Source of the DNA: Carpediemonas membranifera BICM
Taxonomy: Eukaryota > Protista > Fornicata
Length of the DNA stretch: 64,000 nucleotides
Assembly: GCA_019828565.1 (NCBI GenBank)
Contig: JAHDYR010000025.1
Coordinates: 806,001 to 870,000, forward strand
Reading direction: 5' to 3'
Shown piece by piece: positions 6,688-61,054 of this stretch. The notes under the pieces are model-generated. The model saw only the letters and a list, made by a program, of their open reading frames with translations. It did no database searches and was not told where the DNA came from. A program made the translations under genes and the position numbers. Position 1 is the first letter of the stretch. Each line of letters opens with the position of its first letter.

Positions 6688-8514
6688 ATGGTTGGTCACG
6701 AGGAGACAATGCGGTTGTTGGACGCCCATATTGATAGCATTGAGCATGATATAGAGCAGTTGAATGGAATTACGCTCTCTGATGAGGATATCAATCGTCG
6801 CGTTGCGAGAATTGACGCTTCTCGTGCTCGTCTCGCCGCAATGCGCTCATCAATGTCTATGAGCTGCAGAAACATCCAGCGCGACGCTTTTATCACTGCT
6901 AACTCCCGCATGCCAATCGAATGTGCCAATATTCCCGGCGACATTCCCACACTCATGCGAAGCGCCTTCACCCACGAGTTCGGCGAGGTCATCCCGGACG
7001 ATGACGGCGAAGCCGAGCCAGCCACGGCCGATGAAGTCGCCAGCGCGATCGCTGCCCTCGGCCTACACCATCGCAGCGCCATCGACCTTGTCAACAGGGT
7101 TACGGCGATACTCACGCGCGGGCCCCAGCTGAGCATGAACATCCCTCTGGCGCCCGGCGAGGACCTCCCGCCGCGCATCTTCACCCTCCTGCAGGGTACA
7201 ATATGGGCCCTACTCGTCGAGGCGGGGGCCAACCCAGATATACAAGACCGCTTGCTGACACGATCCCAAGCAATGTACCCAGACGCAACCGATTTGCATA
7301 ACAAGATCCGCAAGGCTCTCACCCCCGAGGCCAGGTGCCTCTGGTTCCTCTGCCGCAAGTTCTTCTTCACGCTGAACGTCGCCGAGAAGGACGGCGAGTG
7401 CTTCGACATCATCAGCTTCTATGGATCGTACCACCATCGCGCATACATGGGCCGCCTCTTCATGCTCCACACCTTCTACCACACGGCATACACCCGGGCC
7501 AGGATGCCCCGCGTGCTTGAGTTATTCAACGATCGGCTGGCCCATGGGGCGGTGACGCCCAAGGGTCTGTGGGGCTGGGGTGAGAACTCCTTCAGTCAGC
7601 TGGGGTTCGAGTCGTCTGGGTTTATAACTCCAACCCGGCTCGACTTCCGGGCGTGTTCAGCGGTTGCCAAGGCCGACTCCAGACTGAAACCCTGGCACAA
7701 GGACAGGATGATCACAGGCATCTCCATGGCGAACGGACACAACTTCATTCTTACCACGGTGGGCGCAGTGATGGCTGGTGACCAGGCGGGCTGGTATGTT
7801 GGCCCAGTGCAAGGCAGCCTCCGCTTCCACCCCGTAGCCGTGCCCGCTGGCTTTGTTCCAGATCACGTCATGAATGAGCACTCGACTGTTGTTCTTTCCA
7901 TGGGGCATCGGCAGATGATCAGCGGTGATAACGACTACGGCCGGCTGGGTCTCGGGCATGAAGAGGGGATGACCGGCTTCGTGGACCTGCCCTTCAAGGT
8001 CGACCAGATCGTCGCTTCAGGCACAGAGTATAACATATTTGTCAGCGGCCGGCAGCTCGTGTTTGCCGGGTACGTACTGAGCCATATTGCCCAGCTCGAC
8101 CTTCTCCCCGAGTTCAGCAGAGGTGACAAGTGCCTAGTCGCCGCAACGCTCCAGTTCCCAGAGCATGTGTCAGGCCTCTTCGTCTGTGATGACTGGATGG
8201 CGTGGGTCGGGGTCGACCGGACCTACGTCTGCCAGGCTTTGACTGGGAGCTTCGAGCGGTCGTTCATGGTGCCATTCGAGGTCACGGCAGCCTCACTCGG
8301 CCGAAGAGATTTCTACTTCAGAGGATCGTCTGGGCAATGGTTTAGGGCTTCAAGTACAGGCGGTGGGGTTGCGACCATGAGTGAGTGGCAGACGTGCTCG
8401 CGTTATGAGGAGATCACTCCCGTCGACGTCGACCCATGGGCTGAGCAGAGTCGAACTAGCAGCCCCGTTTCCCTGAGTGAGCTGGGCGAGGTCAACCTCC
8501 ACGCGTGCAGGTGA
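6688..8514 (+). CDS. RCC1-like repeat family protein, copy 1 (intact, type-A N-terminus, divergent C-terminus)
   Basis: 608-aa ORF with RCC1/BLIP-II-like motifs LWGWGENSFSQLGF and ISGDNDYGRLGLGH. Family core CLWFLCRKFFFTLNVAEKDGE and family end motif ITPVDVDPW are present. Confidence 0.85.
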   Translation: MVGHEETMRLLDAHIDSIEHDIEQLNGITLSDEDINRRVARIDASRARLAAMRSSMSMSCRNIQRDAFITANSRMPIECANIPGDIPTLMRSAFTHEFGEVIPDDDGEAEPATADEVASAIAALGLHHRSAIDLVNRVTAILTRGPQLSMNIPLAPGEDLPPRIFTLLQGTIWALLVEAGANPDIQDRLLTRSQAMYPDATDLHNKIRKALTPEARCLWFLCRKFFFTLNVAEKDGECFDIISFYGSYHHRAYMGRLFMLHTFYHTAYTRARMPRVLELFNDRLAHGAVTPKGLWGWGENSFSQLGFESSGFITPTRLDFRACSAVAKADSRLKPWHKDRMITGISMANGHNFILTTVGAVMAGDQAGWYVGPVQGSLRFHPVAVPAGFVPDHVMNEHSTVVLSMGHRQMISGDNDYGRLGLGHEEGMTGFVDLPFKVDQIVASGTEYNIFVSGRQLVFAGYVLSHIAQLDLLPEFSRGDKCLVAATLQFPEHVSGLFVCDDWMAWVGVDRTYVCQALTGSFERSFMVPFEVTAASLGRRDFYFRGSSGQWFRASSTGGGVATMSEWQTCSRYEEITPVDVDPWAEQSRTSSPVSLSELGEVNLHACR

Positions 8515-8816
8515 TTTATTTTTCTGGCGGGCATAAATGAATGGACTTGACATGTACAAGAATTGTGGGATATTGAAAGCTTTGGCAGTGTTGATCCAGC
8601 AAGCCACGCAGTCTGATTCTCCTGAAGAAGTCTGAAGAAGAGGCGTTCCAGCTGGAGTTTGGACGGAGAGTCGCCGTGGATCCGAGAGGTATGGTGGTTA
8701 TGGTAAATGGGATTTGATTGGTTAAACCAAACGCCAGTCAACACTGGGAAACAAGCTGGTACCTCGACTGTTAACCGGTTGAACACGATGGGTAGGTCCA
8801 CAGTGACCATGCATAA

Positions 8817-10487
8817 TTAATTTTGTTTAGCGATCATAGGTCTACGGGCTGACGTTAAGGGGACGATCTCATACATTCCATGAAAAATCAGCGTCTCGCA
8901 CTCTGCCATCGTTGCTACCCCATCTGACACTCTGACCACTTCGAACCACTGGCCGGTGGTGTCACGGAAATTGTGGGCCCAATCCAATAGAGCTGAAGGC
9001 TTCATCTTCTTGAGTTGTGATACCAAATTCCGTCGCCTCAAAGGGCACGCTGTACAGGCCATTATCGTCGCACAGGTTAGTCTCGCCCCCAGTGACCCAG
9101 ATGAGAGTATCAAAAAACAACTCAAAAACTCCCAGAAGTCCCTTGACCCTCTCTCGGAACCGGAACGGCGTCAGCGTGAGGCACACACCATCCTCGCTGT
9201 ATCCAGGCAGCAGGCCCGACTGGGCGATATGAGGGAGAACTAGGCCAGCGAACAGCAGCTCGCGGCCGCTGAGGAAGACGTTGAAGTAATCATTTGACAT
9301 GATCCGGTCGACCCTGAATGGCAAGTCGACGAATCCAGACATATCATTCTCGTGACCAAGTCCCAGCTGGCCATACCAATTGACACCGCTGATCACCTGA
9401 CGATCGCCCATGGAGAGGATGACAGTGTTCCATGCATGCATAATGTGATCTGGGACAAAGCCATACGGCACGGCGACTGGGTGGAAGAGGTGGCTGTTCT
9501 CCCGCTCGACTGGGCCAACATACCATGTTGAATCATCACCAGTCATGACAGTGCCGACCGGAGTGAAGATGAACGTTCGAGCTCTTATCAGCGACACACC
9601 GGTCACCACCCTGTGCTTCTCCCAGGCGGGCAGGCTGGCCTCGCGCTCGGCGACCTTGGGGCAGGCGGGGAAGGTGAGGCGGGTCGGGTCGACGAACCCA
9701 GATGACTTGAACCCCAGCTGACCATTGTAGCAAGCGCCCCAGCCCCACAGACCCTTGGGGGTCCTGGCGATGTGGGTGTACCTGTCGCTGTAGACCTCGA
9801 GGGCCCTGGGCATCCTGGCCCTGGTGAGGGCGGTGTGCTTGGTAGTGACGAGCATGAAGAGTCGGCCCATGTACATGTGGTGGTGGTAGTATCCACTACA
9901 GCTGCACTGATATCTCTCAGCGTCCTTCTCGGCGACGTTCAGCGTGAAGAAGAACTTGCGGCAGAGGAACCAGAGGCATTTGGCCTCGGGGGTGAGAGCC
10001 TTGCGGATCTTGTCATGCATATCGGTCTCATCTGGCTCCTTCTCTCGAGCCTCGTTCAGCACCCTGTCCTCGAGGTCGGGGTTGGCTCCGCCACCCACCA
10101 GACACGCCCACACCGCGCCCTGGTTCAGCGTGTGCATGGCGACCGGGAGCTCCTCGCCATCCGCGAGCTCGACGTTCATGGACAGCGGGGGGCCGCTGGT
10201 GAGGATCGAGCAGGCGCGGTCGAGGAGGGCTTGCGCGGTTGGCTTGAGAGGGGGATCTTGCAGAGCGTGGCGAGGAGGGATTCGAGAGACGGGGCGCTCG
10301 TTGGTGTAGCAGTGCTATCTGTTTTGTGCATCGAGGGCATCTGTTCGCCGAAGTGTCTGGAGTAGGCGCACTGGAGCAACGAGGGGATGTCCCCAGAGAT
10401 GGAGGCCGTTGCGGTGAGCGTGGCGCGGAATGCGGAGATAAGGGCATCTCTGATGGCCGATGGCGAGGAACTAGCACTGCTCATCAT
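8817..10487 (-). pseudogene. RCC1-like family copy 2 (type-B N-terminus; frameshifts near 10250 and near 9000)
   Basis: Family sequence is split over ORFs 10176..10625 (MSSASSSP...GDIPSLLQCAY), 8962..10179 (core and RCC1 motifs) and 8817..9125 (FRDTTGQWFEV tail). Confidence 0.8.
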
Positions 10488-10847
10488 TTCTAACGCTCGG
10501 TTCGGTGGTTCCCAAGTTCTGACTGACGACTTGCCGACCGCCAACCCCAGCTGCAGGCCTGACGCGACGCTGTGAGTCACAATCACAGCAGCAATGACAG
10601 CAAGACCTGTCTCCCAAGCTGCCAATTGCTCTCCTTAGCTGCCCATCGTCTGATGTCACACCACCAGACAGGCCCAACAAGACCCGAGCAGGCTTTACTA
10701 GGTGGTTCCCCGTGTCCATGGGTCGCCTTCATCCGGGATAATCTCATGCGGCGTCTACCTGCCACCCCCAGGCCTGCCCGGCCCGCATCATGCCACCGCC
10801 GACAGTCTGATCTCTAGTCCATGCCGACTCGACGTCCAAGCACATGA

Positions 10848-11312
10848 TCATATCTTTATGTACACGATCATGACCTCCCCGGTGCTGTCCTCGACCGTCT
10901 GCACCTCGTACTGCCCTGACATCCGCACGACGTGGACCACGCCCCCGTCGACGACGGCTGAGCCAATCTTCATGGCCGCAACGACATTGTCGATCGCAAT
11001 CTGCTCGTGGAGCGTCGCATCCCACACGCCGAGGCAGCCGAGGTCCTCTATGAGGGCGATGGCGCCGACGGATTTGAAGACGGGAGGGGTTTTGTCGTTC
11101 CAGTCGTCTTCGTGACGAAGCTCCAAACCAATAGGTACCGAGGCGTCCTTTTCATCTTCATTGTCCTCGAATACGATGCTGGCGCGGTACATTCCCTTCT
11201 TGACGCCGCGAATTGAGAGAGTGGTGCTGGAAGAGCCCTCATTCACTGGATCAAAGGTCATTAGATGGCCAGATGTTACCTCAATTGTTCCCACTTGTCT
11301 TGTTTCCATCAC
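10848..11312 (-). CDS. Small beta-rich protein, DUF4241-like (bacterial-type)
   Basis: 154 aa. N-terminal VGTIEVTSGHLMTFDP...VKKGMYRA resembles the G-x-(I/L)-x-V-x-SG-x-(L/I)-x-x-x-DP / GxY pattern of DUF4241 proteins, judged by eye. Confidence 0.55.
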   Translation of the reverse strand: MMETRQVGTIEVTSGHLMTFDPVNEGSSSTTLSIRGVKKGMYRASIVFEDNEDEKDASVPIGLELRHEDDWNDKTPPVFKSVGAIALIEDLGCLGVWDATLHEQIAIDNVVAAMKIGSAVVDGGVVHVVRMSGQYEVQTVEDSTGEVMIVYIKI

Positions 11313-11548
11313 CCGTTGTTGTTCTGCTGAGTTGTCGTGTACAACATGTCAGTTGTCTTCAGAGTCAAGAACGGTCAAACATCGTCATGCAGCCTCAAAA
11401 TATGTGACGTATGCATCGGAGCATCTCAGTCCCGCCCAGTCACGAGAGACCTCTTCCGTCTCAAGGGATGGGTCGACTCTGACGTCAGGGGTTGAACCAC
11501 AAGGCCATAGAATCGCATGGTCTGTATTATTGCCAATATAATCAGTCT

Positions 11549-13306
11549 TTAATCCTGGGTCCATGGGTCAAGGTCGACTGGGATGATCTCTGCCGACCAT
11601 CTGGGTGCCTCGCACTCGACCAACTCGGCCACCCCATCTGACACCGTCTTCGCGTAAAACCACTGGCCGGAGGTGTCACGGAACGAGAGGACGTCGCTGT
11701 CACTAACCCACTGTCCGCCAGCTGCTGTCGTCTCAAAGGGCACACAGAACTGCTTGTCGTTATCGCACAGGTGAGTGCGGCCCTCGGTGACCCAGGCGAG
11801 TGTCAGCTGGTCACAACAGAACTCTTCACAAAGGAACCCCTTGACTCTCTCTCGGAACCGGAGCGGGGTGGCTGTGAGGCACTTGTCGCCCTCGCTGTAC
11901 CCATGCAGCATGCCCGACTGGGCGATATGAGGTGTAACTCGGCCAGCGAAGAGCAGCTGGCGGCCGCTGAGGAAGACGTCGAAATCGAATTCAAAGGCTA
12001 TGATCCGGTCGACCCTGAATGGCAAGTCGACGAATCCAGACATATCATTCTCGTGACCAAGTCCCAGCTGGCCATACCAATTGACACCGCTGATCGCCCA
12101 TTGAGAGGATGACAGTGTTCCATGCATGCATAATGTGATCTGGGACAAAGCCATACGGCACGGCGACTGGGTGGAAGAGGTGGCTGTTCTCCCGCTCGAC
12201 TGGGCCGACATACAAGTTTGAACTCGCACCTGCCACGACGGTGCCGAACGGGGTGAGAATGAACGTCTCATCTTCCTTCAGCGACACATACGTCACCATC
12301 CTGTACTTATCCCAGGCTGGCAGGCTGGCCTCGCGCTCGGCGACCTTCGGGGCAGTTGGTGAAGGGTCGGGTCGACGAACTCATATGACTTGAACCCCAG
12401 CTGACCATAATAGTTCTCCCCCCAGCCCCACAGACCCTTGGGTGTCCTGGCGATGAGGGTGGTCCAGTTGCTGTAGATCTCGAGGGCCCTGGGCATCCTG
12501 GCCCTGGTGAGGGCGGTGTGCTTGGTAGTGACGAGCATGAAGAGTCGGCCCATGTACATGTGGTGGTGGTAGTATCCACTACAGCTGCACTGATATCTCT
12601 CACCGTCCTTCTCGGCGACGTTCAGCGTGAAGAAGAACTTGCGGCAGAGGAACCAGAGGCACTTGGCCTCGGGGGTGAGAGCCTTGCGGATCTTGTTATG
12701 CAAATCGGTTGCGTCTGGGTACATTGCTTGGGATCGTGTCAGCAAGCGGTCTTGTATATCTGGGTTGGCCCCCGCCTCGACGAGTAGGGCCCATATTGTA
12801 CCCTGCAGGAGGGTGAAGATGCGCGGCGGGAGGTCCTCGCCGGGCGCCAGAGGGATGTTCATGCTCAGCTGGGGCCCGCGCGTGAGTATCGCCGTAACCC
12901 TGTTGACAAGGTCGATGGCGCTGCGATGGTGTAGGTCGAGGGCAGCGAGCGCGCTGGCGACTTCATCGGCCGTGGCTGGCTCGGCTTCGCCGTCATCGTC
13001 CGGGATGACCTCGCCGAACTCGTGGGTGAAGGCGCTTCGCATGAGTGTGGGAATGTCGCCGGGAATATTGGCACATTCGATTGGCATGCGGGAGTTAGCA
13101 GTGATAAAAGCGTCGCGCTGGATGCTTCTGCAGCTCATAGACATTGATGAGCGCATTGCGGCGAGACGAGCGCGAGAAGCGTCCATTCTCGCGATTCGGG
13201 CGTCGATCTCCTCATCGAGAAGCATCGTGCCATTCAAACGAGCAATATCGGCATCAATATCGGAGATGTGGACGTCCAGCCGCTGAAGAGCATCCTGAGC
13301 ATCCAT
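11549..13306 (-). pseudogene. RCC1-like family copy 3 (type-A N-terminus; deletions/frameshifts near 12360 and 12095)
   Basis: ORFs 12293..13306, 12045..12299 and 11549..12271 each carry consecutive family segments. An 11-nt deletion between GATC repeats is seen relative to copies 2 and 4. It ends IPVDLDPWTQD*. Confidence 0.85.
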
Positions 13307-13594
13307 CGTATTCGAGAACGACTCGCTTGCAGTCGCCCCCGACTTGGACCATTGGGACGCAGGCCCGTCCAGGCGAGCTCCGAGGCCATAACGTCACAGA
13401 GAAACCCAAGTAACTATATACACTGTCTGTGGTTTGGGGCAAAGCCGCTTCTTCCCAATCATGTTAGCCGGCCCCTCCGAACAGAGATGCGCTCAAAGGA
13501 CTGCGATACGGGACGAATCGGCTCAGTCTGACACTGGTTGACCGAGCGTGAGGGCTCATCAATTGATTTGCCACTGTAGCATGGTCATGCAACG

Positions 13595-30399: not shown

Positions 30400-30670
30400 C
30401 TGAAGGCTCTCATTCAGATGTGCATCTCGGCCGGCTTCCACGGGGTCACGACGGGGACGATCTCCAAGTTCGTTCTGGGCGCCATGCTTTCGACCACCAT
30501 AGGAAACCCCCGTCACCTCGAACCACTGGCCAGTGGGGTCGCGGAGTAACTCGACAATTTTGGTACCAGCTCTGTCAAATCTTATGGTAAATTCCGGCGT
30601 CTCAAACTGCACATAAAACTGATGGATATCGTATAGATGAGTGCAGCCCTCAGTGCCCCAAATAAGCTTG
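30400..30670 (-). pseudogene. Decayed 3' remnant of the RCC1-like family
   Basis: LIWGTEGCTHLYD...LRDPTGQWFEV matches family tails. The 3' flank TCTGAATGAG(AG)CCTTCA matches that of copy 6 at about 42342. Confidence 0.7.
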
Positions 30671-30874: not shown

Positions 30875-32641
30875 TTAAAGCTCGGCCCACGGGTCAAGGT
30901 CGACTGGGATGATCTCTGCCGACCATCTGGGTGCCTCGCACTCGACCAACTCGGCCACCCCATCTGACACCGTCTTCGCGTAAAACCACTGGCCGGTGGA
31001 GTTGCGGAATGAGAGGGTGTATCTGCCTCTTATCCTAACCTGTCTGCTGTCAAAAGCCGTCGCCTCAAAGGGCACGCTGTACTGTTTGTCACGGCTGTAC
31101 ATGTGAGTGCGGCCCTCAGTGACCCAGATAAGCTCATAGCCACAAAAGAATCCCTTGACTCTCTCTCGGAAGCGGAGCGGGGTGGCTGTGAGGCACTTGT
31201 CGCCCTCACTGTACCCAGACAGCAGGCCCGACTGGGCGATAGGACGGGGAACTTCGCCAGCGAAGAGCAGCTGGCGGTCGCTGAGGAAGACGTTGAAGTA
31301 ATCATTTGACATGATCCGGTCGACCCTGAATGGCAAGTCGACGAATCCAGACATATCATTCTCGTGACCAAGTCCCAGCTGGCCATACCAATTGACACCG
31401 CTGATCACCTGACGATCGCCCATGGAGAGGATGACAGTGTTCCATGCATGCATGATGTGATCTGGGACAAAGCCAGTAGGCACAGAGACTGGGTGGAAGA
31501 GGTGGCTGTTCTCCCGCTCGACTGGGCCGACATACCATGTTGAATCCGCACCCGCAACTATGCCGACCGGGGTGAGTATGAACGTCTGCCAGCCATCCAT
31601 CGACACATCGGTCACCATCCCATGCTTCTCCCAAGCGGGCAGGCTGGCCTCGAGCTCGGCGACCTTCGGGCAGGCGGGGAAGGTGAGGCGGGTCGGGTCG
31701 ACGAACCCAGACGACTGGAACCCCAGCTGGCCAAGTTCGCTATACCCCCAGCCCCACATGCCCTTGGGCGTCCTGGCGATGTGGGCGAGGTGACCATCAA
31801 ACTCGTGGCTGTAGACCTCGAGGGCCCTGGGCATCCTGGCCCTGGTGAGGGCGGTGTGCTTGGTAGTGTCGAACATGAAGAGTCGGCCCATGTACATGTG
31901 GTGGTGGTATCCACTCCAGCTGCACTGATATCTCTCACCGTCCTTCTCGGCGACGTTCAGCGTGAAGAAGAACTTGCGGCAGAGGAACCAGAGGCACTTG
32001 GCCTCGGGGGTGAGAGCCTTGCGGATCTTGTTATGCAAATCGGTTGCGTCTGGGTACATTGCTTGGGATCGTGTCAGCAAGCGGTCTTGTATATCTGGGT
32101 TGGCCCCCGCCTCGACGAGTAGGGCCCATATTGTACCCTGCAGGAGGGTGAAGATGCGCGGCGGGAGGTCCTCGCCGGGCGCCAGAGGGATGTTCATGCT
32201 CAGCTGGGGCCCGCGCGTGAGTATCGCCGTAACCCTGTTGACAAGGTCGATGGCGCTGCGATGGTGTAGGCCGAGGGCAGCGATCGCGCTGGCGACTTCA
32301 TCGGCCGTGGCTGGCTCGGCTTCGCCGTCATCGTCCGGGATGTCCTCGCCGAACTCGTGGGTGAAGGCGCTTCGCATGAGTGTGGGAATGTCGCCGGGAA
32401 TATTGGCACATTCGATTGGCATGCGGGAGTTAGCAGTGATAAAAGCGTCGCGCTGGATGTTTCTGCAGCTCATAGACATTGATGAGCGCATTGCGGCGAG
32501 ACGAGCGCGAGAAGCGTCCATTCTCGCGATTCGGGCGTCGATCTCCTCATCGAGAAGCATCGTGCCATTCAAACGAGCAATATCGGCATCAATATCGGAG
32601 ATGTGGACGTCCAGCCGCTGAAGAGCATCCTGAGCATCCAT
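30875..32641 (-). CDS. RCC1-like family copy 4 (intact, type-A N-terminus, 588 aa from MDAQDAL)
   Basis: Single ORF whose ATG at 32641 matches the copy-3 start. Motifs MWGWGYSELGQLGF and ISGVNWYGQLGLGH. Ends IPVDLDPWAEL*. Confidence 0.88.
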   Translation of the reverse strand: MDAQDALQRLDVHISDIDADIARLNGTMLLDEEIDARIARMDASRARLAAMRSSMSMSCRNIQRDAFITANSRMPIECANIPGDIPTLMRSAFTHEFGEDIPDDDGEAEPATADEVASAIAALGLHHRSAIDLVNRVTAILTRGPQLSMNIPLAPGEDLPPRIFTLLQGTIWALLVEAGANPDIQDRLLTRSQAMYPDATDLHNKIRKALTPEAKCLWFLCRKFFFTLNVAEKDGERYQCSWSGYHHHMYMGRLFMFDTTKHTALTRARMPRALEVYSHEFDGHLAHIARTPKGMWGWGYSELGQLGFQSSGFVDPTRLTFPACPKVAELEASLPAWEKHGMVTDVSMDGWQTFILTPVGIVAGADSTWYVGPVERENSHLFHPVSVPTGFVPDHIMHAWNTVILSMGDRQVISGVNWYGQLGLGHENDMSGFVDLPFRVDRIMSNDYFNVFLSDRQLLFAGEVPRPIAQSGLLSGYSEGDKCLTATPLRFRERVKGFFCGYELIWVTEGRTHMYSRDKQYSVPFEATAFDSRQVRIRGRYTLSFRNSTGQWFYAKTVSDGVAELVECEAPRWSAEIIPVDLDPWAEL

Positions 32642-32725: not shown

Positions 32726-32730
32726 TGCCC

Positions 32731-37433: not shown

Positions 37434-39104
37434 TTACTGCTCGGCCCACGGGTCGACGTCGACTGGGGTGATTTCCCAGAAAAGTGGTTCAAAAAATGCC
37501 TTACGCTTGACCATCTTAGCCACCCCACCTGACACTTTCTTCACGTCAAACCACTTGCCGCTGGAGTGACGGTATGAACGGGCGCTTATGATTTCTAAAC
37601 AGTCGGCCTCAAAGGGTACACAGTACTGCTTGTCGCTATCGCACAGGTGGGTCTGGCCCTCAGTGACCCAGACAAGAGTCGACTCTTGGCAATAGAATCC
37701 CTTGACCCTCTCTGGGAAGCGGAGCGGGGTGCCTGTGAGACACACGTCATCTTCTCTGTACCCAGGCAGCAGGCCCGACTGGGCGATATGAGGGAGAACT
37801 TGGCCGGCGAACAGCAGCTGGCGGCCGCTGAGGAAGACATTGAAGTAACAGCCTGGCATGATCCGGTCGACCCTGAATGTCGGCTCCTCGAAGCCAGTCA
37901 TCTCGTTCTCGTGCCCGAGTCCCAGCCGGCCACAGAAGTTCCATCCGCTGATCATTCGTCGATCGCCCATGGAGAGTATTACATTATTACCATTATAATC
38001 TGCTATATGATCTGGGATAAAGTCAGACGGCATAACAACTGGGTGAAAGCCATCTCGGTTTTCCTCCTCGACTGGGCCTACAAACGGCATCAGAAGATCC
38101 CAGAACCACCCATAGCCAGCCATGACAGTGCCGACTGGTGTGCGTATGAACGTCCGTTTGCCTTTTGTCATCCCTTTGTCCACAATCAACGCATCAGTCA
38201 CCATCCTGTGCTTCTCCCAAGGGGGCAGGCTGGCCTCGAGCTCGGCGACCTTGGGGCAGTTGGGGAAGGTGAGGCGGGTCGGGTCGACGAACCCAGATGA
38301 CTTGAACCCCAGCTGGCTATATTCGTTGTAGCCCCAGCCCCACAGACCCTTGGGCGTCCTGGCGATGTGGGTGTACCTGTCGCTGTAGACCTCGAGGGCC
38401 CGGGGCATCCTGGCCCTGGTGAGGGCGGTGTGCTTGGTAGTGTCGAGCATGAAGAGTCGGCCCATGTACATGTGGTGGTGGTAGTATCCACTACAGCTGC
38501 ACTGATATCTCTCACCGTCCTTCTCGGCGACGTTCAGCGTGAAGAAGAACTTGCGGCAGAGGAACCAGAGGCACTTGGCCTCGGGGGCGAGAGCCTTGCG
38601 GATCTTGTTATGCAAATCGGTTGCGTCTGGCCACTTCTCTCGAGCCTCGTCCAGCACCCTGTCCTCGAGGTCGGGGTTGGCCCCGCCACCCACCAGACAC
38701 GCCCACACCGCGCCCTGGTTCAGCGTGTGCATGGCGACCGGGAGCTCCTCGCCGTCCGCGAGCTCGACGTTCATGGACAGCGGGGGGCCGCTGGTGAGGA
38801 TCGAGCGGGCGCGGTCGAGGAGGGCTTGCGCGGATGGTTCGAGAAGGTGGATCTCTGAGAGCGCGGCGAGGAGGGATTCGAGATCCTGGCCATCTTGCGG
38901 CGCGTCTGTGGTTGTATGACTGCGGATAAACCTCCTGAATGCGTTCAGCATCCGAGATAAGAGCGGCATTTGCTCGTCGAAGTGACGCTGGTACGCGCAG
39001 GCAATGAGCGAGGGGATGTCGCCTGCAATGCTGCTCGTGGCCGTTATTGAGAGCCGATGGGCCGCGATCAGCGCCTTTCGCGTCTTCTTGTCTCCATTGC
39101 TCAT
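37434..39104 (-). CDS. RCC1-like family copy 5 (intact, type-C N-terminus, 556 aa from MSNGDKK)
   Basis: Single ORF with LWGWGYNEYSQLGF and ISGWNFCGRLGLGH. Ends ITPVDVDPWAEQ*. Confidence 0.88.
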   Translation of the reverse strand: MSNGDKKTRKALIAAHRLSITATSSIAGDIPSLIACAYQRHFDEQMPLLSRMLNAFRRFIRSHTTTDAPQDGQDLESLLAALSEIHLLEPSAQALLDRARSILTSGPPLSMNVELADGEELPVAMHTLNQGAVWACLVGGGANPDLEDRVLDEAREKWPDATDLHNKIRKALAPEAKCLWFLCRKFFFTLNVAEKDGERYQCSCSGYYHHHMYMGRLFMLDTTKHTALTRARMPRALEVYSDRYTHIARTPKGLWGWGYNEYSQLGFKSSGFVDPTRLTFPNCPKVAELEASLPPWEKHRMVTDALIVDKGMTKGKRTFIRTPVGTVMAGYGWFWDLLMPFVGPVEEENRDGFHPVVMPSDFIPDHIADYNGNNVILSMGDRRMISGWNFCGRLGLGHENEMTGFEEPTFRVDRIMPGCYFNVFLSGRQLLFAGQVLPHIAQSGLLPGYREDDVCLTGTPLRFPERVKGFYCQESTLVWVTEGQTHLCDSDKQYCVPFEADCLEIISARSYRHSSGKWFDVKKVSGGVAKMVKRKAFFEPLFWEITPVDVDPWAEQ

Positions 39105-40664: not shown

Positions 40665-42346
40665 CTTGTCTCTGGCCGGGGCGCAGCTCCCCTTCTGGTC
40701 GCTAGGCCTGGGGCATGGGGCACTGCGGGGTGTCCGACTGCAGCCAATGGAGACAAGAAGACGCGAGAGGCGCTGAGCACTGCCCGTAGACTCTCAATTA
40801 CTGCTACGAGCAGCATCGCAGGCGACATCCCCTCGCTCATTGCCTGCGCGTACCAGCGTCACTTCGACGAGCAAATGCCGCTCTTATCTCGGATGCTGAA
40901 CGCATTCAGGAGGTTTATCCACAATCATACAACCACAGACGCGCCGCAAGATGGCCAGGATCTCGAATCCCTCCTCGACCGCGCCCGCTCGATCCTCACC
41001 AGCGGCCCCCCGCTGTCCATGAACGTCGAGCTCGCGGACGGCGAGGAGCTCCCGGTCGCCATGCACACGCTGAACCAGGGCGCGGTGTGGGCGTGTCTTA
41101 TGGGTGGCGGAGCCAACCCCGACCTCGAGGACAGGGTGCTGGACGAGGCTCGAGAGAAGTGGCCAGACGCAACCGATTTGCATAACAAGATCCGCAAGGC
41201 TCTCGCCCCCGAGGCCAAGTGCCTCTGGTTCCTCTGCCGCAAGTTCTTCTTCACGCTGAACGTCGCCGAGAAGGACGGTGAGAGATATCAGTGCAGCTGT
41301 AGTGGATACTACCACCACCACATGTACATGGGCCGACTCTTCATGTTCGACACTACCAAGCACACCGCCCTCACCAGGGCCAGGACGCCCAGGGCCCTCG
41401 AGGTCTACAGCGACTGGTTCACCCACATCGCCAGGACCCCCAAGGGTCTGTGGGGCTGGGGCGCTTGCTACAATGGTCAGCTGGGGTTCAAGTCATCTGG
41501 GTTCGTCGACCCGACCCGCCTCACCTTCCCCAACTGCCCCAAGGTCGCCGAGCTCGAGGCCAGCCTGCCCCCTTGGGAGAAGCACAGGGTGGTGACCGGT
41601 GTGTCGCTGATAAGAGCTCGAACGTTCATCTTCACTCCGGTCGGCACTGTCATGACTGGTGATGATTCAACATGGTATGTTGGCCCAGTCGAGCGGGAGA
41701 ACAGCCACCTCTTCCACCCAGTCGCCGTGCCGTATGGCTTTGTCCCAGATCACATCATGCATGCATGGAACACTGTTATCCTCTCCATGGGCGATCGACG
41801 AATGATCAGCGGATGGAACTTCTGTGGCCGGCTGGGACACGGGCACGAGAACGAGATGACTGGCTTCGAGGAGCTGCCCTTCAGGGTCGACCGGATACCA
41901 AGCATTGGGAATTACTGCAGCATCTTCCTCAGCGGCCGCCAGCTGCTGTTCGCCGGCCAAGTTCTCCCTCATATCGCCCAGTCGGGCCTGCTGCCTGGAT
42001 ACAGCGAGGATGGTGTGTGCCTCACGCTGACGCCGTTCCGGTTCCGAGAGAGGGTCAAGGGACTTCTGGGAGTTGTTTTACGATACTCTCATCTGGGTCA
42101 CTGAGGGCGAGACTAACCTGTGCGTCGATGATGGCCTGTACAGCGTGCCCTTTGAGGGCGACGGCATTTGGCAAAAGAGAAGCAAATGGCAGCTGGGTCC
42201 TCTCATTCTGCGACCCCACCGGCCAGTGGTTCGAGGTGGTCAGAGTGTCAGATGGGGTTTCTGAGCTGGTCGAGTGTGTGGCGCCCAAATGGACCTGGGA
42301 TATCATCCCTGTCGACCCGTGGACTCCGGACGAAACGGGTGTCTGA
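40665..42346 (+). pseudogene. RCC1-like family copy 6 (type-C; original ATG region deleted, in-frame 51-nt deletion, 3' frameshifts)
   Basis: The 5' flank is homologous to copy 5 but lacks the ...GACATGAG start region. ORF 40875..42104 is followed by tails in 42073..42264 and the 3' part of 41672..42346. Confidence 0.8.
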
Positions 42347-49861: not shown

Positions 49862-50352
49862 ATGACTGTCGTCCTTGGCTGGCAGATCCTCAGTCCCTTG
49901 TCGCAGTGAATCTCACTCAACCCGACGGAGTCAAAGGGCATGTTCTCATATCAAATCCACTTATGCGATAAACTGGGCCTAACTCAATGGGGTCTGAGCG
50001 TTCTCCACTGGTTGGATGGGTAGCATTGCATCCAGGTTGTCAGGCCACCACGGGCGATGAAGGTCGGGAAGTCGCTTCACTATGCCGGAGGAATAGGGCT
50101 AAGCCACGATTCTTCAACACTGCCCTGTCATGCTACTTGTCACATGCTCGTCGGTTTACTGGGGCGAAGTCAGAGGCACGATCTCTCTTGTGTCATCCCT
50201 CTCTCAACTAGCAGCCACCATATCATTGTCTTCCGCATGGTGACAGACTCATCTCGACTCAGCCTGATCCGACTGAGATCTCCTTCGTACATTCTGATTC
50301 CACTCTGATCCGATTTGGTGCAGTGAATCTGGAAAATCTCACTTGCGCTTAA

Positions 50353-51335
50353 CAAACGAAATGAAGCTTGCTGCGTTCTTCCTGCTGGCATTCGTTGCTA
50401 CCGTGTACGCCACCGGTGTTAGAACCGTCAACGACGAAGAATTCGTCTTCGGCGTCACCGAGCTCGCCCACCTCGGCACCGAGGAGAAGATGACGGGCGA
50501 GGAGGCCTACCAGTTCATCCTTGGTATCGTTGAGGGCATTGGTGGCGATCTTGGCCACGATGCCGAGCAGTGCCTCTCTGATTCGTACGAAGCGCTCAAC
50601 TACTTCATCGATGGCTACAACGAGCTCGTTCAGAACGACGCGCCCCTCAAGTTCGCCAGAGACTGCGGCCGTGGCCTCGAGGAGATCTACTCCGCCGTCA
50701 AGGCATGCGGCTCCGCCGAGGGCGACATCAAGAACGCCGCTGAGCTCCTGCTCTCCGGTGGCCTCTCCGTCGTCTGGCACGCTGGAATCAGCCTCGTGAT
50801 CCACGGCGTTGAGATCTACCACTGGGTCAAGGACTGTTACGAGAGCTTCGAGGGCGGCTCCTACAACCAGGCTGGCCGTGACATCGGTGACATCATCTCG
50901 ACCCTTCTCTAAACATCGTGTTGCGAGTATCTTGACGGTATGCCTGGTAGAGGGCTTGTATCGCATTGGCTGAGCTGCGTGCTTCGCTGCCATAGACCGA
51001 AGTCACTGGGCCCGAACCCAGCAACTGGAGGTCGATTACGGGGAGAAAACAACGTGATCGCACCTTTCTAGTGATGTACTGTCCCCTCCCAGCATCTTCC
51101 CAAAATTGGTATTGTGTGGTGGCGTCACGATGACCGTGCACTTTAGCAGATGTGCACTTTAAGTACTGTCACGGTGTCCATGGCTTTGCGAATGTCGCAC
51201 ACTTCCAGCTCTGGACCGATTTTGACCATGCGTATTGTGAGGCCCCCATCTGGAAAAGTTTGATGAAAACAACGTGATTGTGCTTGGAAGGAGGTGCCAA
51301 GGTAGTATACGTTCAGTTTGGATTCAATGGGGATG
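50353..51335. repeat. Left arm of 983-bp inverted repeat (partner 52048..53030)
   Basis: Reverse-complement identity by inspection, with boundary coordinates summing to 103383. Identical ORF translations appear on opposite strands. Confidence 0.92.
50361..50912 (+). CDS. Secreted small helical Cys-containing protein B (paralogue of A)
   Basis: Signal peptide MKLAAFFLLAFVATVYA. Shares EFxFGVT, FILGxVEG, SGGLSxVxHAGxSLVxHGVxIYHWVKDCYE and AGRDIGDII with A. Confidence 0.88.
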   Translation: MKLAAFFLLAFVATVYATGVRTVNDEEFVFGVTELAHLGTEEKMTGEEAYQFILGIVEGIGGDLGHDAEQCLSDSYEALNYFIDGYNELVQNDAPLKFARDCGRGLEEIYSAVKACGSAEGDIKNAAELLLSGGLSVVWHAGISLVIHGVEIYHWVKDCYESFEGGSYNQAGRDIGDIISTLL

Positions 51336-52047
51336 TTTTATGAGATATTTGGGCGTTTAAGTGTGGAATGAGAGAACGACGATCCGAAAACGAAGATCAT
51401 GTACTTAAATGAGTGAAAAACGAGATATCGTTGAAGCGCCACAACATAGTGTCGTCATTATTGAGAACGCAGTTTATCAGACCTTCGGGTGAAGAGAGTC
51501 GGGCAAACCTGTGGGCACAGGGCCTTGGGACTCTACATGTCAGTATACTAGGAATACAGGGTGGCTGCTGGTTTATACAGGTTCGTTGGCCTCAACGCAG
51601 TCTTGATGAGCGGCATACGACTCAACCGTGCAGAAGACTCAACAGCACTAGGGCCGGAAGAAACATGGTCGAGGCACCTACTAGTAGCTTTCTAGCAGCG
51701 CTACACCGTGTTACCCATGACCACAGGCAGCTGATAGCGTCCATCTCCAAGTACCTCCAAGCATGAGTTTCGACGGTGCAAAAAAGACTGTAGCTACGCT
51801 CCATGCGATCGTAGAATCGACATGCAGATGCCCTTTGGTTCTGTGCATGCGCGTAGCCATAAATCCTGAACCCGGCCAACGAGACTAGCAGTGCAGGCTA
51901 ATGTACGAGCTGCTGGAGAAGCAATGAGCAATGTTTGCCATGGAAAACCGTCACGAATACCGTTCTAACGTCATAACCAGTCAATTGCGTAAGTTTGAGC
52001 GCCAGAGCACTCATTAATTTGTCTATCGATCGAGAACAGCTGGGAGG

Positions 52048-53030
52048 CATCCCCATTGAATCCAAACTGAACGTATACTACCTTGGCACCTCCTTCCAAG
52101 CACAATCACGTTGTTTTCATCAAACTTTTCCAGATGGGGGCCTCACAATACGCATGGTCAAAATCGGTCCAGAGCTGGAAGTGTGCGACATTCGCAAAGC
52201 CATGGACACCGTGACAGTACTTAAAGTGCACATCTGCTAAAGTGCACGGTCATCGTGACGCCACCACACAATACCAATTTTGGGAAGATGCTGGGAGGGG
52301 ACAGTACATCACTAGAAAGGTGCGATCACGTTGTTTTCTCCCCGTAATCGACCTCCAGTTGCTGGGTTCGGGCCCAGTGACTTCGGTCTATGGCAGCGAA
52401 GCACGCAGCTCAGCCAATGCGATACAAGCCCTCTACCAGGCATACCGTCAAGATACTCGCAACACGATGTTTAGAGAAGGGTCGAGATGATGTCACCGAT
52501 GTCACGGCCAGCCTGGTTGTAGGAGCCGCCCTCGAAGCTCTCGTAACAGTCCTTGACCCAGTGGTAGATCTCAACGCCGTGGATCACGAGGCTGATTCCA
52601 GCGTGCCAGACGACGGAGAGGCCACCGGAGAGCAGGAGCTCAGCGGCGTTCTTGATGTCGCCCTCGGCGGAGCCGCATGCCTTGACGGCGGAGTAGATCT
52701 CCTCGAGGCCACGGCCGCAGTCTCTGGCGAACTTGAGGGGCGCGTCGTTCTGAACGAGCTCGTTGTAGCCATCGATGAAGTAGTTGAGCGCTTCGTACGA
52801 ATCAGAGAGGCACTGCTCGGCATCGTGGCCAAGATCGCCACCAATGCCCTCAACGATACCAAGGATGAACTGGTAGGCCTCCTCGCCCGTCATCTTCTCC
52901 TCGGTGCCGAGGTGGGCGAGCTCGGTGACGCCGAAGACGAATTCTTCGTCGTTGACGGTTCTAACACCGGTGGCGTACACGGTAGCAACGAATGCCAGCA
53001 GGAAGAACGCAGCAAGCTTCATTTCGTTTG
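52048..53030. repeat. Right arm of 983-bp inverted repeat (partner 50353..51335)
   Basis: Same evidence as the left arm. The unique spacer 51336..52047 is 712 bp. Confidence 0.92.
52471..53022 (-). CDS. Secreted protein B, identical inverted copy
   Basis: Translation is identical to 50361..50912 from MKLAAFF onward. Confidence 0.88.
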   Translation of the reverse strand: MKLAAFFLLAFVATVYATGVRTVNDEEFVFGVTELAHLGTEEKMTGEEAYQFILGIVEGIGGDLGHDAEQCLSDSYEALNYFIDGYNELVQNDAPLKFARDCGRGLEEIYSAVKACGSAEGDIKNAAELLLSGGLSVVWHAGISLVIHGVEIYHWVKDCYESFEGGSYNQAGRDIGDIISTLL

Positions 53031-53103
53031 GTTGTAATGGTTGGTGATTGTGAGATTTTCGAGATTTTTTGTCTGTGTCCTCTACGAGACCAAGGAGAGG
53101 CCG

Positions 53104-53391
53104 GCCAGCCAAGGACGACAGTCATTTACACAAGAACGCCGATGATGTCACCGATGTCGCGGCCGGCGTCGAGCCAGTTCTTCTCCTCGAAGTTCTCGTA
53201 GCAGTCCTTGACCCAGTGGTAGATGTCGACGCCGTGCAGGACGAGGGATACGCCGGCGTGGTAGACGATCGACAGCCCGCCGGAAGAGAGAAGCTCGGCG
53301 GTCTCCTCAATGGCATCCTCGGTCGAGCCGCAGGCGTCGATGGCGTCGTAAATCGCCTGGAGGCCCTCGGCGCAGTCGAGAGCGAACTGCC
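53104..53391 (-). pseudogene. 5'-truncated inverted copy of secreted protein A (matches 49596..49883)
   Basis: 288-bp reverse-complement match (QFALDCAEG...GDIIGVLV* plus 3' flank). It lacks the signal peptide, exon 1 and intron. Confidence 0.85.
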
Positions 53392-53989
53392 AGGTCCTGC
53401 AACATATCAGGCGACTCCTCATCGAACAATATTTGGCGCGTATGCCTTTGCTGATGGAAGGCGCAGTTTCAAATCTTTCAATATATCCGAAACAATGAAG
53501 ATACGGTATTAACACTAATAGTACCTACCGTGTATTCGACATTCTGTCTTTATCTGGCCGTTTCTAGCAGTTATCTGTGTCTGCGGCCACGGCGACGTCT
53601 GTGAGTTCTGAGGTGGGAAGAGACATCAACCGCTTCATTTTCAGTGTTTTCGTCTTCAATATCAGCAGCTCGAATGACGATAGTAGACTCACTTCCGCCC
53701 ATTCTACTTCGTTGCTTGGAGATCTGGAAAAAAATCTCGAAATATGATCGCAGTTTGGATCTTTCTGATTGGCAGTAGTTGCTGTTCAACGCGATTCGTT
53801 GTCAACTGCAATGATGGCCCCGGGCGTTTACCACACCCGTCAGGTCATACCCCAACTCTATCGCGTCCGTTGACATCACCCTCCACCCACGCAACCATGC
53901 TGAGGCACGCTGACCGGGACCAACCATTAATTATTAAGACAAGGCGGTCGGTGACCCCGTTCGCGACTCCACTGAGTGAGGAGCAAACG

Positions 53990-54364
53990 GCTGTGGTTCG
54001 CACTGGGGTTTTGCTGGAGTTACTAGGAGGCGTGTGCCCCACACCGGCGCCGCTCCTTTTCCTAGAGAGGGTCAAGGGGTTTTACCTCGATGGGTCGGTT
54101 CTGATCTGGGTGGCTGAGGGCCGCACCAACTACCGCAGCACTGCCGACGCTGGAGAAGTCCCGGTCGAGGCAACAGCTGCGTCCTTGACGTTCCCCACTC
54201 CTGCCTTCCGCGACGCGTCAGGCCAGTGGTGGTTGCTGGGTCTGCTCGCGCGGGCCATCCTCGCGGCCATGGGCGCGACTAGCCTCGGCAAGAGCGCGCT
54301 GAGACGGGTCGACGAGCCGACGGCGGATGTTGTGGAGCTGACGCCAGCGGACGCGTGGGGCTGA
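53990..54364 (+). pseudogene. Divergent C-terminal fragment of the RCC1-like family (within ORF 53744..54364)
   Basis: GVCPTPAPLLFLERVKGFYLDGSVLIWVAEGRTN...PVEATA...FRDASGQW...ELTPADAW aligns with family tails. The upstream part of the ORF is unrelated. Confidence 0.65.
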
Positions 54365-54535: not shown

Positions 54536-56189
54536 ATGAGCAGCGCTAGTTCCTCGCCATCGGCCATCAGAGATGCGCTGAGCTCCGTATTCCGCGAGTC
54601 GCTCACCGCAACGGCCTCCGTCTCCGGGGACATCCCCTCGTTGCTCCAGTGCGCCTACTCCAGACACTTCGGCGAACAAATGCCCTCGATGCACAAAACA
54701 GATAGCACTGCTACACCAACGAGCGCCCCGTCTCTCGAATCCCTCCTCGCCACGCTCTGCAAGATCCCCCTCTCAAGCCAACCGCGCAAGCCCTCCTCGA
54801 CCGCGCCTGCTCGATCCTCACCAGCGGCCCCCCGCTGTCCATGAACGTCGAGCTCGCGGACGGCGAGGAGCTCCCGGTCGCCATGCACACGCTGAACCAG
54901 GGCGCGGTGTGGGCGTGTCTTATGGGTGGCGGGGCCAACCCAGACCTCGAGGACAGGGTGCTGGACGAGGCTCGAGAGAAGTGGCCAGATGAGACCGAGA
55001 TGTACGACAAGCTCCGCAAGGCTCTCACGCCCGAGGCCAAGTGCCTCTGGTTCCTCTGCCGCAAGTTCTTCTTCACGCTGAACGTCGCCGAGAAGGACGG
55101 CGAGAGCTATCAGTGCAGTGACGAGGATGAGTGTGGTAACTGTTACGGATGTTACCACCACCGCATGTACATGGGCCGACTCTTCATGCTCGACACTACC
55201 AAGCACACCGCCCTCACCAGGGCCAGGATGCCCAGGGCCCTCGAGGTCTACAGCAACTGGATCACCCATATCGCCAGGACGCCCAAGGGTCTGTGGGGCT
55301 GGGGGGAGAACTATTATGGTCAGCTGGGGTTCAAGTCATTGGGTTCGTCGACCCGACCCGCCTCACCTTCCCCAACTGCCCCAAGGTCGCCGAGCGCGAG
55401 GCCAGCCTGCCCGCCTGGGATAAGTACAGGATGGTGACGGATGTGTCGATGGATGGATGGCAGGCGCTCATTCTCACCCCGGTCGGCACTGTCATGGCTG
55501 GTGAGGGTCCAAGAAGGTATGTCGGCCCAGTCGAGGCGAACACCGAACGCTTCCACCCAGTCGCCGTGCCCGCTGGCTTTGTCCCAGATCACATCATGCA
55601 TTTATGGAACAGCGCTGTCATCCTCTCCATGGGCGATCGGCAAATGATCAGTGGAGATAATGAGTATGGCCGGCTGGGACACGGGCACGAGAACGAGATG
55701 ACTGGCTTCGAGGAGCTGCCCTTCAGGGTCGACCGGATACCAAGCATTGGGCTAGATAATACCTTCAATTACTTCCTCAGCGGCCACCAGCTGCTGTTCG
55801 CTGGTCTAGTTCGCCCTCATATCGCCCAGTCGGGCCTGCTGCCAGGGTACAGTGAGTACGCTCGCTGCCTCACAGCCACCCCATTCCGCTTCCCAAAGAA
55901 AGTCAGGGGGTTCTATTGCCAAGAGTCGACTCATGTCTGGGTCACTGATGGCCATACTCATTTCTGCAATTACGACAAGCAGTACGCTGTGCCCTTTGAG
56001 GTGACAGTATTTGGAAATCAGTGGGTTAGTGACAGCGACGTCCTCTCGTTCCGCAACTCCACCGGCCAGTGGTTTGAGGCGAAGACGGTGTCTGATGGGG
56101 TGGCTGAGATGGTCGAGTGCGAGACACCGTTTGCTTGGCAGATGCACAAGATCACCCCAGTCGACGTCGACCCGTGGGTCAAGCAGTAA
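54536..56189 (+). pseudogene. RCC1-like family copy 7 (type-B; frameshifts near 54770 and 55339)
   Basis: Split over ORFs 54527..54844, 54841..55437 and 55149..56189. Ends ITPVDVDPWVKQ*. Confidence 0.85.
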
Positions 56190-56303
56190 ACGATAATAGA
56201 ACCCATGCCGCGAGTGGGTTGACCCAGCGCCACTACTCAGCCCCGACGGCAGTGCCACCCCACCACAGTTGGACCGGTCACAACACACACTTGACATGCT
56301 ATG

Positions 56304-56310
56304 ATTTACT
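56304..56310 (-). terminator. Putative polyadenylation signal AGTAAAT overlapping the OYE stop
   Basis: The same AGTAAAY motif occurs at or just after several other stops and resembles the Giardia AGTRAAY signal. Confidence 0.55.
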
Positions 56311-58878: not shown

Positions 58879-59263
58879 GCTCCTGCGGCCACTGCCTTCT
58901 CGACTCGACAACGAGTCGAAGATTCGAAAGGCAGGAGCCACGCAATAGTAGTAGTAGAGGTGCAACACATGGTGCAACTCTTCCCATCAATGCCTGCCGG
59001 GGTCAGGATCCCTCTGTCAGTGGCTGCTCGTAAATGCCAATCGGCATCTTCAACAACCCGTGGCTGTACTCTCACACAGCCACCAGACGAGGCCGGGGCA
59101 GCCTGGTAGGTCAACGATATTATACAGAAGCGGTCAAGTTGGGGTTGCCCCTAAGACTAAGCCACCGCAGACCTTTTCAAGGAAAAGAGGGGTGGCGCCA
59201 GGTCCATCTTCTGTCTCAAGGATCGGGCCAACTCCTGTGGATGAGCATGCAATAAAACAGTGT

Positions 59264-59347
59264 TTAATCCTGGGTCCACGGGTCGACATCGACGGGGGTG
59301 ATCTCGTACACTTTCCAAGCAGCCGGCGTCTCACGCTTGACCACCTC
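59264..59347 (-). pseudogene. Short 3'-terminal remnant of another RCC1-like family copy
   Basis: Reverse strand reads EVVKRETPAAWKVYEITPVDVDPWTQD*. The downstream flank (CTTCTGTCTCAAGG, 59208..59221) resembles that of copy 3 (about 11455). Confidence 0.75.
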
Positions 59348-59406
59348 ATTGGGTCAACCCACTCGCGGCAGGGTCTAATGGAATTATCTAATGGAACTAG
59401 TATCAT

Positions 59407-61054
59407 TTACTGCTCGGCCCACGGGTCAAGGTCGACTGGGATGATCTCTGTCCGCCTTATGGACACCTCGCACTCGACCAACTCGGCCACCCCATCTGAC
59501 ACCGTCTTCGCGTAAAACCACTGGCCGGTGGAGTTGCGGAACGAGAGGACGTCGCTGTCACTAACCCACTGATTTCCAAATACTGTCACCTCAAAGGGCC
59601 CAGCGTACTGCTTGTCGTAATTGCAGAAATGAGTATGGCCATCAGTGACCCAGACATGAGTCGACTCTTGGCAATAGAACCCCCTGACTTTCTTTGGGAA
59701 GCGGAATGGGGTGGCTGTGAGGCAGCGAGCGTACTCACTGTACCCTGGCAGCAGGCCCGACTGGGCGATATGAGGGAGAACTTGGCCGGTGAACAGCAGC
59801 TGGCGGCCGCTGAGGAAGTAATTGAAGGTATTATCTAGCCCAATGCTTGGTATCCGGTCGACCCTGAAGGGCAGCTCCTCGAAGCCAGTCATCTCGTTCT
59901 CGTGCCCGAGTCCCAGCCGGCCATACTCATTATCTCCACTGATCATTTGCCGATCGCCCATGGAGAGGATGACAGCGCTGTTCCATAAATGCATGATGTG
60001 ATCTGGGACAAAGCCAGCGGGCACGGCGACTGGGTGGAAGCGTTCGGTGTTCGCCTCGACTGGGCCGACATACCTTCTTGGACCCTCACCAGCCATGACA
60101 GTGCCGACCGGGGTGAGAATGAGCGCCTGCCATCCATCCATCGACACATCCGTCACCATCCTGTACTTATCCCAGGCGGGCAGGCTGGCCTCGCGCTCGG
60201 CGACCTTGGGGCAGTTGGGGAAGGTGAGGCGGGTCGGGTCGACGAACCCAATGACTTGAACCCCAGCTGACCATAATAGTTCTCCCCCCAGCCCCACAGA
60301 CCCTTGGGCGTCCTGGCGATATGGGTGTACCTGTCGCTGTAGACCTCGAGGGCCCGGGGCATCCTGGCCCTGGTGAGGGCGGTGTGCTTGTCAGTGTCGA
60401 GCATGAAGAGTCGGCCCATGTACATGCGGTGGTGGTAACATCCGTAACAGTTACCACACTCATCCTCGTCACTGCACTGATAGCTCTCGCCGTCCTTCTC
60501 GGCGACGTTCAGCGTGAAGAAGAACTTGCGGCAGAGGAACCAGAGGCACTTGGCCTCGGGGGTGAGAGCCTTGCGGATCTTGTTATGCAAATCGGTTGCG
60601 TCTGGCCACTTCTCTCGAGCCTCGTCCAGCACCCTGTCCTCGAGGTCTGGGTTGGCCCCGCCACCCAGCAGACACGCCCACACCGCGCCCTGGTTCAGCG
60701 TGTGCATGGCGACCGGGAGCTCCTCGCCGTCCGCGAGCTCGACGTTCATGGACAGCGGGGGGCCGCTGGTGAGGATCGAGCAGGCGCGGTCGAGGAGGGC
60801 TTGCGCGGTTGGCTTGAGAGGGGGATCTTGCAGAGCGTGGCGAGGAGGGATTCGAGAGAAGGGGCGCTCGTTGGTGTAGAAGTGCTATCTGTTTTGTGCA
60901 TCGAGGGCATTTGTTCGCCGAAGTGTCTGGAGTAGGCGCACTGGAGCAACGAGGGGATGTCCCCAGAGATGGAGGCCGTTGCGGTGAGCGTGGCGCGATG
61001 TGCGGAGATAAGCGCATCTCTGATGGCCGATGGCGAGGAACTAGCGCTGCTCAT
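59407..61054 (-). pseudogene. RCC1-like family copy 8 (type-B; same two frameshifts as copy 7)
   Basis: Split over ORFs 60746..61063, 60153..60749 and 59407..60297. It is an inverted near-copy of 54536..56189. Confidence 0.85.

Follow-up and report, generated by a model that had tools for sequence, protein, structure and literature searches.

Copies of a propeller gene family in Carpediemonas membranifera

The window analysed here is a 64,000-nt stretch of DNA (contig C13, positions 806001-870000) in the 24.2-Mb, 69-contig assembly of Carpediemonas membranifera, a haploid free-living metamonad whose genome was assembled from nanopore reads and polished with Illumina reads (PMC8516963). It contains eight near-full copies of one gene family together with three tail or 3' remnants (Table 1), all at the places that a preliminary description of this DNA had given. 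The division into intact copies (1, 4 and 5) and disrupted ones (2, 3, 6, 7 and 8) was likewise recovered, the latter five being frameshifted. Some disrupted copies, of the copy 2 type, retain a frame of 405-449 aa that starts at an internal ATG. Single family copies are separated by ordinary genes, encoding a dynein heavy chain, a lipoate ligase, an LMWPc/ArsC-type protein, a flavin oxidoreductase and a TCP10-domain protein. Unrelated sequences in the same region also have duplicates, 99-100% identical and 0.13-1.3 kb long. Contig C13 terminates in retroelement-like sequence, and with a contig end of this kind a subtelomeric location of the family cannot be claimed.

Table 1. Family copies and remnants in the window (positions counted from its first nucleotide)
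Feature	Position	Strand	State	Remarks
Copy 1	6688..8514	+	intact, 608 aa	propeller old and divergent, about 62% to other copies; type-A head 98-100% identical with copies 3/4 across about 600 nt; one RNA-like contig of 1,112 nt matches the tail without a difference
Copy 2	8827..10487	-	broken; 405 aa frame from internal ATG	1-nt deletion near 10255, also present in copies 7 and 8 and in two copies beyond the window; 19 nt inserted near 9012-8999
Copy 3	11549..13306	-	broken but transcribed	mosaic propeller with a type-A head; net loss of 7 nt at about 12365-12350; microhomology deletion of 11 nt near 12096
Tail remnant	30437..30670	-
Copy 4	30875..32641	-	intact, 588 aa	AlphaFold model pLDDT 91.9
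Copy 5	37434..39104	-	intact
Copy 6	40743..42346	+	broken	in-frame deletion at microhomology near 40938, 8 nt deleted near 42075, 1 nt inserted near 42156; of all copies in the genome, the one at C13:870.8 kb is closest (96% over 582 nt)
3' remnant of another copy	53744..54364	+		immediately upstream of copy 7; an upstream stretch of 580 nt is common to copy 7 and the copy at C13:870.5 kb (99.5%)
Copy 7	54536..56189	+	broken	1-nt deletions near 54765 and 55339
Tail remnant	59261..59348	-		behind copy 8
Copy 8	59407..61054	-	broken	inverted; 96% to copy 7; carries both copy-7 1-nt deletions (near 60825 and 60251)

At the DNA level the family was surveyed across a contiguous 258 kb (C13:766-1,024 kb), of which family copies occupy 18%. 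Copies above 850 nt in length number 29 in this region: about 11 are intact, 14 have frameshifts and 4 are truncated. In the genome as a whole, 150 of 348 candidates scored against a profile of the conserved helical module, which gives a family of 150 members or more, distributed over about 33 contigs. The proteins form 108 clusters at 50% identity (E below 1e-30). Most dispersed members retain open frames of at least 500 aa; the membership, the spread, the predominance of long frames and the number of clusters together imply long retention. Young copies are concentrated in a few regions, among housekeeping genes and in either orientation, and further clusters lie on contigs C67 and C3. The overall pattern is that of birth-and-death evolution, with old intact members dispersed, young clusters bearing pseudogenes, and sequence tracts shared according to distance.

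The named matches of the window homologs all trace to C. membranifera, as does every named match among the full-architecture matches checked, and no homologs of the N-domain were found outside this species, C. frisia being possibly absent from the databases. A literature search for Carpediemonas RCC1 proteins found no paper describing the family, and RCC1 goes unmentioned in the C. membranifera genome paper and its supplements (PMC8516963). The family is apparently undescribed.

Protein architecture and variation of the loops

The AlphaFold model of copy 4, built from a 118-member input (pLDDT 91.9), has a helical region at residues 1-234 and an RCC1-like propeller at about 236-582. PF00415 scores above cut-off in copies 1 and 4, and the top fold matches of the model are all RCC1-like domains (Foldseek E 5e-12; VIA Z up to 16, rmsd 6.5), in agreement with the propeller assignment made beforehand. 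The resemblance is one of fold only, with an identity to true RCC1 of 12-15%. The N-domain yielded no convincing match in Pfam, PDB, fold and Atlas searches, which covered F-box, BTB and others, its best VIA match being to generic ferritin-like bundles (Z 6.5). Neither NACHT, NB-ARC nor known effector domains were detected by Pfam or fold search. A crude hydropathy scan, which is not a signal-peptide predictor, saw no hydrophobic stretch at the N terminus of 108 of 118 members. This supports the earlier observation that signal peptides are missing and the view that this is not a surface-antigen family, a surface product being unsupported.

Loop classes were placed from predicted strands on an alignment that had already been seen, and hence not fully blind; with this placement, pN is 0.41 in the A-B turns and 0.35 at the starts of the C-D loops versus 0.055 in the B-C turns, and family-wide entropy is 2.9-3.0 bits in the variable loops versus 1.7 in the B-C turns. 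Asn, Tyr, Cys, Trp and Ser are over-represented in the variable loops. Each loop has 7-11 alleles among 12 copies and, across the family, 105-113 distinct forms in about 117 members. Because nearly every member has its own loops, this diversity stems for the most part from old divergence, and it is chiefly the young clusters that show shuffling. The A-B and C-D connections of a propeller share one face, and the same face binds partners in RCC1, UVR8 and BLIP-II. From the DSSP blade order of the model and general propeller geometry, the hypervariable loops are predicted to cluster on that one face.

The framework and the N-domain are under purifying selection (pN/pS 0.21-0.53; 0.21 in the B-C turns). 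The loops lie above them (pN/pS 0.78-0.91, pS 0.39-0.53), but none exceeds 1, and recent changes in the loops are too few to settle selection. Third-position GC in the loops is about 0.45, compared with 0.71-0.86 in housekeeping genes, and codon bias is lost. This pattern fits old alleles under balancing selection, fast turnover or relaxed constraint. The last of these, taken further, would make the variation a largely non-adaptive by-product, with a region prone to templated duplication and conversion amplifying and scrambling a dispensable gene whose loops vary only as they are unconstrained. A loop pN/pS near 1, the high pS, the lost codon bias, the many broken copies and the other perfect duplicates nearby point in this direction. 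We nevertheless regard it as unlikely: the B-C turns, which are equally exposed, are strongly conserved, the framework and N-domain are under purifying selection, and family size, dispersal, long frames and cluster number imply long retention.

A slightly less likely proposal concerns the N-domain and what the propellers would deliver their targets to. The family could be an expanded set of SCF substrate adaptors, its helical module (copy 4 residues about 160-230) being a cryptic F-box with an insertion; such adaptors would route diverse targets to ubiquitination, a reading compatible with the conversion mechanism described below, as it concerns the effector step only. Visual inspection shows a Leu-Pro helix, an insertion of variable length and a Cys-Lys/Arg-aromatic motif at the place where an F-box would be expected. 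The genome has two Skp1 and five cullin matches beside no F-box match above cut-off, and two RCC1 matches outside the family bear F-box matches. However, the Pfam F-box is absent in 98 and in 53 members, and it is missing among the fold matches. The hhalign probability is 0.2%, and an insertion-free profile gave p = 0.35 and 0.81, all profile tests being weak because they had two F-box sequences as comparators; a search for further F-box comparator sequences found none.

Segmental exchange between paralogs

The shared peptide blocks quoted in the preliminary description as signs of a patchwork, 13 of 13, are present exactly in the copies named, several of them also in copies beyond the window. 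The PHI statistic gives an overwhelming recombination signal (z = -45 for the eight window copies, -69 for 22 copies), with site incompatibility climbing from 0.11 to 0.53 with distance, whereas no-recombination simulations (n=8; one tree, clustered rates) gave PHI z between +0.2 and -2.3. When the gene was divided into five consecutive blocks, each rejected the trees of the other four (AU p < 0.02, 2,000 replicates), and the claim that the copies form no simple tree is borne out by these three analyses. Globally significant identical fragments were found in 163 of 210 pairs (median 108 columns, range 31-468) by a permutation test that is inflated by clustered variation, and because of this inflation we rely on PHI and simulation. 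Segmental tracts common to paralogs are thus confirmed by PHI, identical fragments, simulations and AU tests, and gene conversion is probably the mechanism that made the mosaics.

The tracts with which nearby copies overwrite one another measure roughly 30-470 nt. The further apart two copies lie, the less tract they share (rho -0.59, Mantel p 0.0002), whatever their orientation (p 0.85), and the best DNA matches genome-wide are local copies. Since the blades within one gene are not near-identical, exchange joins equivalent positions of different genes. The length of identical tract per pair is equal for intact-intact (360 nt), intact-broken (377 nt) and broken-broken (350 nt) comparisons. Frameshifts move between loci: identical 1-nt lesions recur in five, four and two copies, and two copies have the same 11-nt deletion. 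The 417 switch intervals are spread over the gene, with a density of about 19-38 per 100 columns along most of it, including the N-domain, which has no cassettes. No preferred donor, recipient or breakpoint was seen among the copies compared. Flanks are swapped as well, with homology ending anywhere from 0 to about 580 nt past the gene. Retroposition or transposon-borne spread was considered and rejected, the copies having neither poly-A tails nor fixed ends. Taken together, this behaviour suggests general non-allelic conversion plus templated duplication, rather than a system that moves sequence from donors to an expression site.

Expression was assessed from Illumina contigs of two public runs, probably one data set deposited twice and derived from bulk material. 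Their nature appears to be RNA, judging by the absence of intergenic coverage and the 10 Mb of contigs, and they were compared with window positions 7450-13449. Two contigs specific to copy 3, at 12184-12372 (189 nt) and 11684-11876 (193 nt), match it with 0 differences each. The former is unique in the assembly, the next-nearest copy being 90% identical, and the latter has at least 52 differences from every other copy in the DNA compared; both cross blocks of differing ancestry. The copy-3 frameshift lies inside the first contig, 8 letters from its end and so short of formal bridging. Depth is 3-9 on the contigs of broken copy 3 versus 10.5 on intact copy 1. Since copy-specific RNA-like contigs match exactly, the copy-3 mosaic is independently supported and this broken copy is transcribed. 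Illumina support extends to parts of copies 1 and 3, pieces of copy 2 fitting other copies equally. In one further contig the type-A head (12925-12950) has 3 changes within 25 nt that copies 1, 3 and 4 lack. As to the frameshifts being possible nanopore homopolymer errors, no inserted or missing letters are listed in the RNA-like contigs, the shared 1-nt site near 10255 not being demonstrably bridged.

These results split the interpretation first given to the mosaics, namely segmental gene conversion from silent copies. Segmental exchange between paralogs stands; the silent pseudogene reservoir is not supported, RNA-like contigs being found for both copy 1 and broken copy 3. It is improbable that the family practises programmed combinatorial variation, in which silent cassettes feed expressed loci as in VSG, vlsE or pilE and new variants appear within a clonal lineage. 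The framework-plus-cassette layout with its 7-11 alleles per loop, the breakage of about half of the local copies and the variant type-A contig are features that such a system would share. Against it, copy 3 is transcribed (one broken copy tested, with bulk RNA-like contigs, which would also fit expression of one copy per cell), tracts are shared without intact/broken asymmetry, frameshifts have spread across loci, breakpoints are evenly distributed and not linked to cassettes, and there is no array or expression-site layout. No dedicated switching system was evident among the copies examined. Equally doubtful is an actively diversifying intracellular repertoire, in which loop-focused mutagenesis and conversion would be fast enough to yield new binders in clonal cultures, possibly as a by-product of origin-independent, recombination-based replication. 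Its basis is the scrambling of loop synonymous sites to intergenic base composition.

That the mosaics are assembly or polishing chimeras is very improbable: the assembly was indeed built from nanopore R9.4 reads with correction by Illumina reads, which could map to several copies, some lesions are 1-nt deletions within C runs and one RNA-like contig departs from the assembly at three sites, but the independent 189-nt and 193-nt contigs reproduce the mosaic stretches of copy 3 with no differences and no indels listed, several lesions are microhomology deletions of 8-51 nt, and read mis-mapping would not make tract sharing track genomic distance.

Candidate function and comparison with known families

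We consider it fairly probable that this is a Carpediemonas-specific multigene family shaped by birth-and-death and undirected local gene conversion, and that its products are intracellular binding proteins. New copies would arise by templated duplication at the DNA level. Nearby copies overwrite each other with short tracts, with no preferred donor or recipient, and this overwriting homogenises the framework, reassorts long-diverged loop alleles and spreads frameshifts. Exchange would proceed from paralog to paralog by ordinary homologous recombination, which is plausibly frequent in a haploid organism relying on Dmc1-type recombination. C. membranifera lacks NHEJ and Rad51, and Dmc1-dependent recombination has been proposed for its replication (PMC8516963); their loss and Dmc1-based replication would favour ectopic exchange.

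As to function, we lean, by a narrower measure, towards recognition, with cytosolic or nuclear binders whose variable loops would form one ligand surface, its diversity being maintained by the recognition of foreign or fast-changing targets. The conserved N-domain would connect the members to a common partner. Our searches found no ligand or effector domain for the propeller family, and no dN/dS above 1; a role in defence or genetic conflict stands as a candidate. Innate recognition is poorly described in free-living protists, and a family of 150-300 members, in which a conserved scaffold would present a single hypervariable face, offers a concrete candidate for such a repertoire. Its basis is RCC1 instead of LRR or WD40, joined to an N-domain without known match. 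The paralogs are also natural reporters of ectopic recombination in a eukaryote without ORC and Cdc6, where the Dmc1-dependent replication model could be probed through the length of tracts, their decay with distance and their rate across clones.

The closest parallel in behaviour is with the fungal NWD/HNWD genes (het-d and het-e of Podospora anserina), a family of 10 members with demonstrated positive selection, in which active and pseudogene loci swap propeller sequences and residues at the surface become diverse (PMC1805685). Both are intracellular propeller families with exchange between active genes and pseudogenes, a homogenised framework and variation at the interaction surface. By contrast, the Carpediemonas propeller is of RCC1 type and not WD40, has no NACHT or HET domain, and its blades are not near-identical within a gene; the family has at least 150 members as opposed to 10, and its loops reach a pN/pS of 0.78-0.91 where positive selection is established in NWD genes. 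By this analogy, it appears to work like the NWD genes without being one of them.

Plant NLR clusters are local and consist of chimeric paralogs that arise by frequent exchange, with pseudogenes and variable exposed residues. The Carpediemonas clusters resemble them in all these respects, but have no NB-ARC, TIR or LRR, and their copies are interspersed with housekeeping genes instead of being arrayed. Trypanosome VSG, Borrelia vlsE and Neisseria pilE encode surface antigens, and in these systems silent donors pass sequence in one direction into an expression site. The family shares with these systems short-tract mosaics of variable blocks within conserved frameworks; unlike them, it lacks a signal peptide, transcribes a broken copy and exhibits no directionality, and thus fails the tests that define VSG-type variation. 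Finally, proteins with RCC1-like domains (RCC2, RPGR, WBSCR16, UVR8 and the HERC RLDs) have the propeller fold in common with the family, from which they differ at 12-17% identity and an rmsd of 5-6.5, the Carpediemonas proteins having degenerate repeats, an unmatched N-domain and hypervariable loops. Large expansion of RCC1 genes has a precedent in Symbiodinium, with 189 genes (PMC4083563).

Identity tract and RNA-like variant of the type-A head

The sharpest single tract of the window lies between two intact copies of the RCC1-like propeller gene, copies 1 and 4 (table), which are 98–100% identical across ∼600 columns before identity falls abruptly to 44–76%. The type-A head, the N-terminal portion common to copies 1, 3 and 4, is spanned by an RNA-like contig (from public Illumina runs, RNA nature inferred) of 448 nt at depth 27, for which the frameshifted copy 3 is nearest. 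At the head-variant site, this contig carries three changes within 25 nt that are absent from copies 1, 3 and 4; they may reflect variation in the culture, an error introduced by polishing, the collapse of a copy or the merging of a paralog bubble.

Neighbouring genes and ubiquitin-ligase components

The 154-aa gene lying between copy 2 and copy 3 showed no RNA-like coverage. Several propeller-gene copies outside the window are followed by sequence related to it.

Features of the window and their Pfam matches
Feature	Position in window	Pfam search
Copy 1/copy 4 tract	6760-7400	
154-aa gene	10848-11312	no match
Head-variant site	12925-12950	
Dynein heavy chain, 4,545 aa	16674-30311	N-terminal and stalk models only; AAA models unmatched
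Nested short genes	49255-53515	no match

Bearing on the rival view of the family as SCF adaptors with a cryptic F-box, a genome-wide domain search gave two Skp1 and five cullin matches in C. membranifera, and no F-box match over the cut-off with a first-pass filter that may overlook short domains.

Duplicated DNA and the contig end

The nested short genes form an inverted arrangement, have signal-peptide-like N-termini and include an inverted duplicate (983 bp, 100% identical) and a second such duplicate (291 bp, 99.7%). At the end of contig JAHDYR010000025.1 (1,023-1,024.5 kb), no telomere repeats were found; instead, inspection by eye indicated retroelement-like sequence, comprising a frame that resembles an endonuclease and a fragment resembling reverse transcriptase. 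The 766-1,024 kb region, which includes the window, contains several dispersed duplicates of unrelated sequence (0.13-1.3 kb, 99–100% identity), and a 370-bp repeat occurs on the contig at ∼785, 901, 995 and 1,010 kb.
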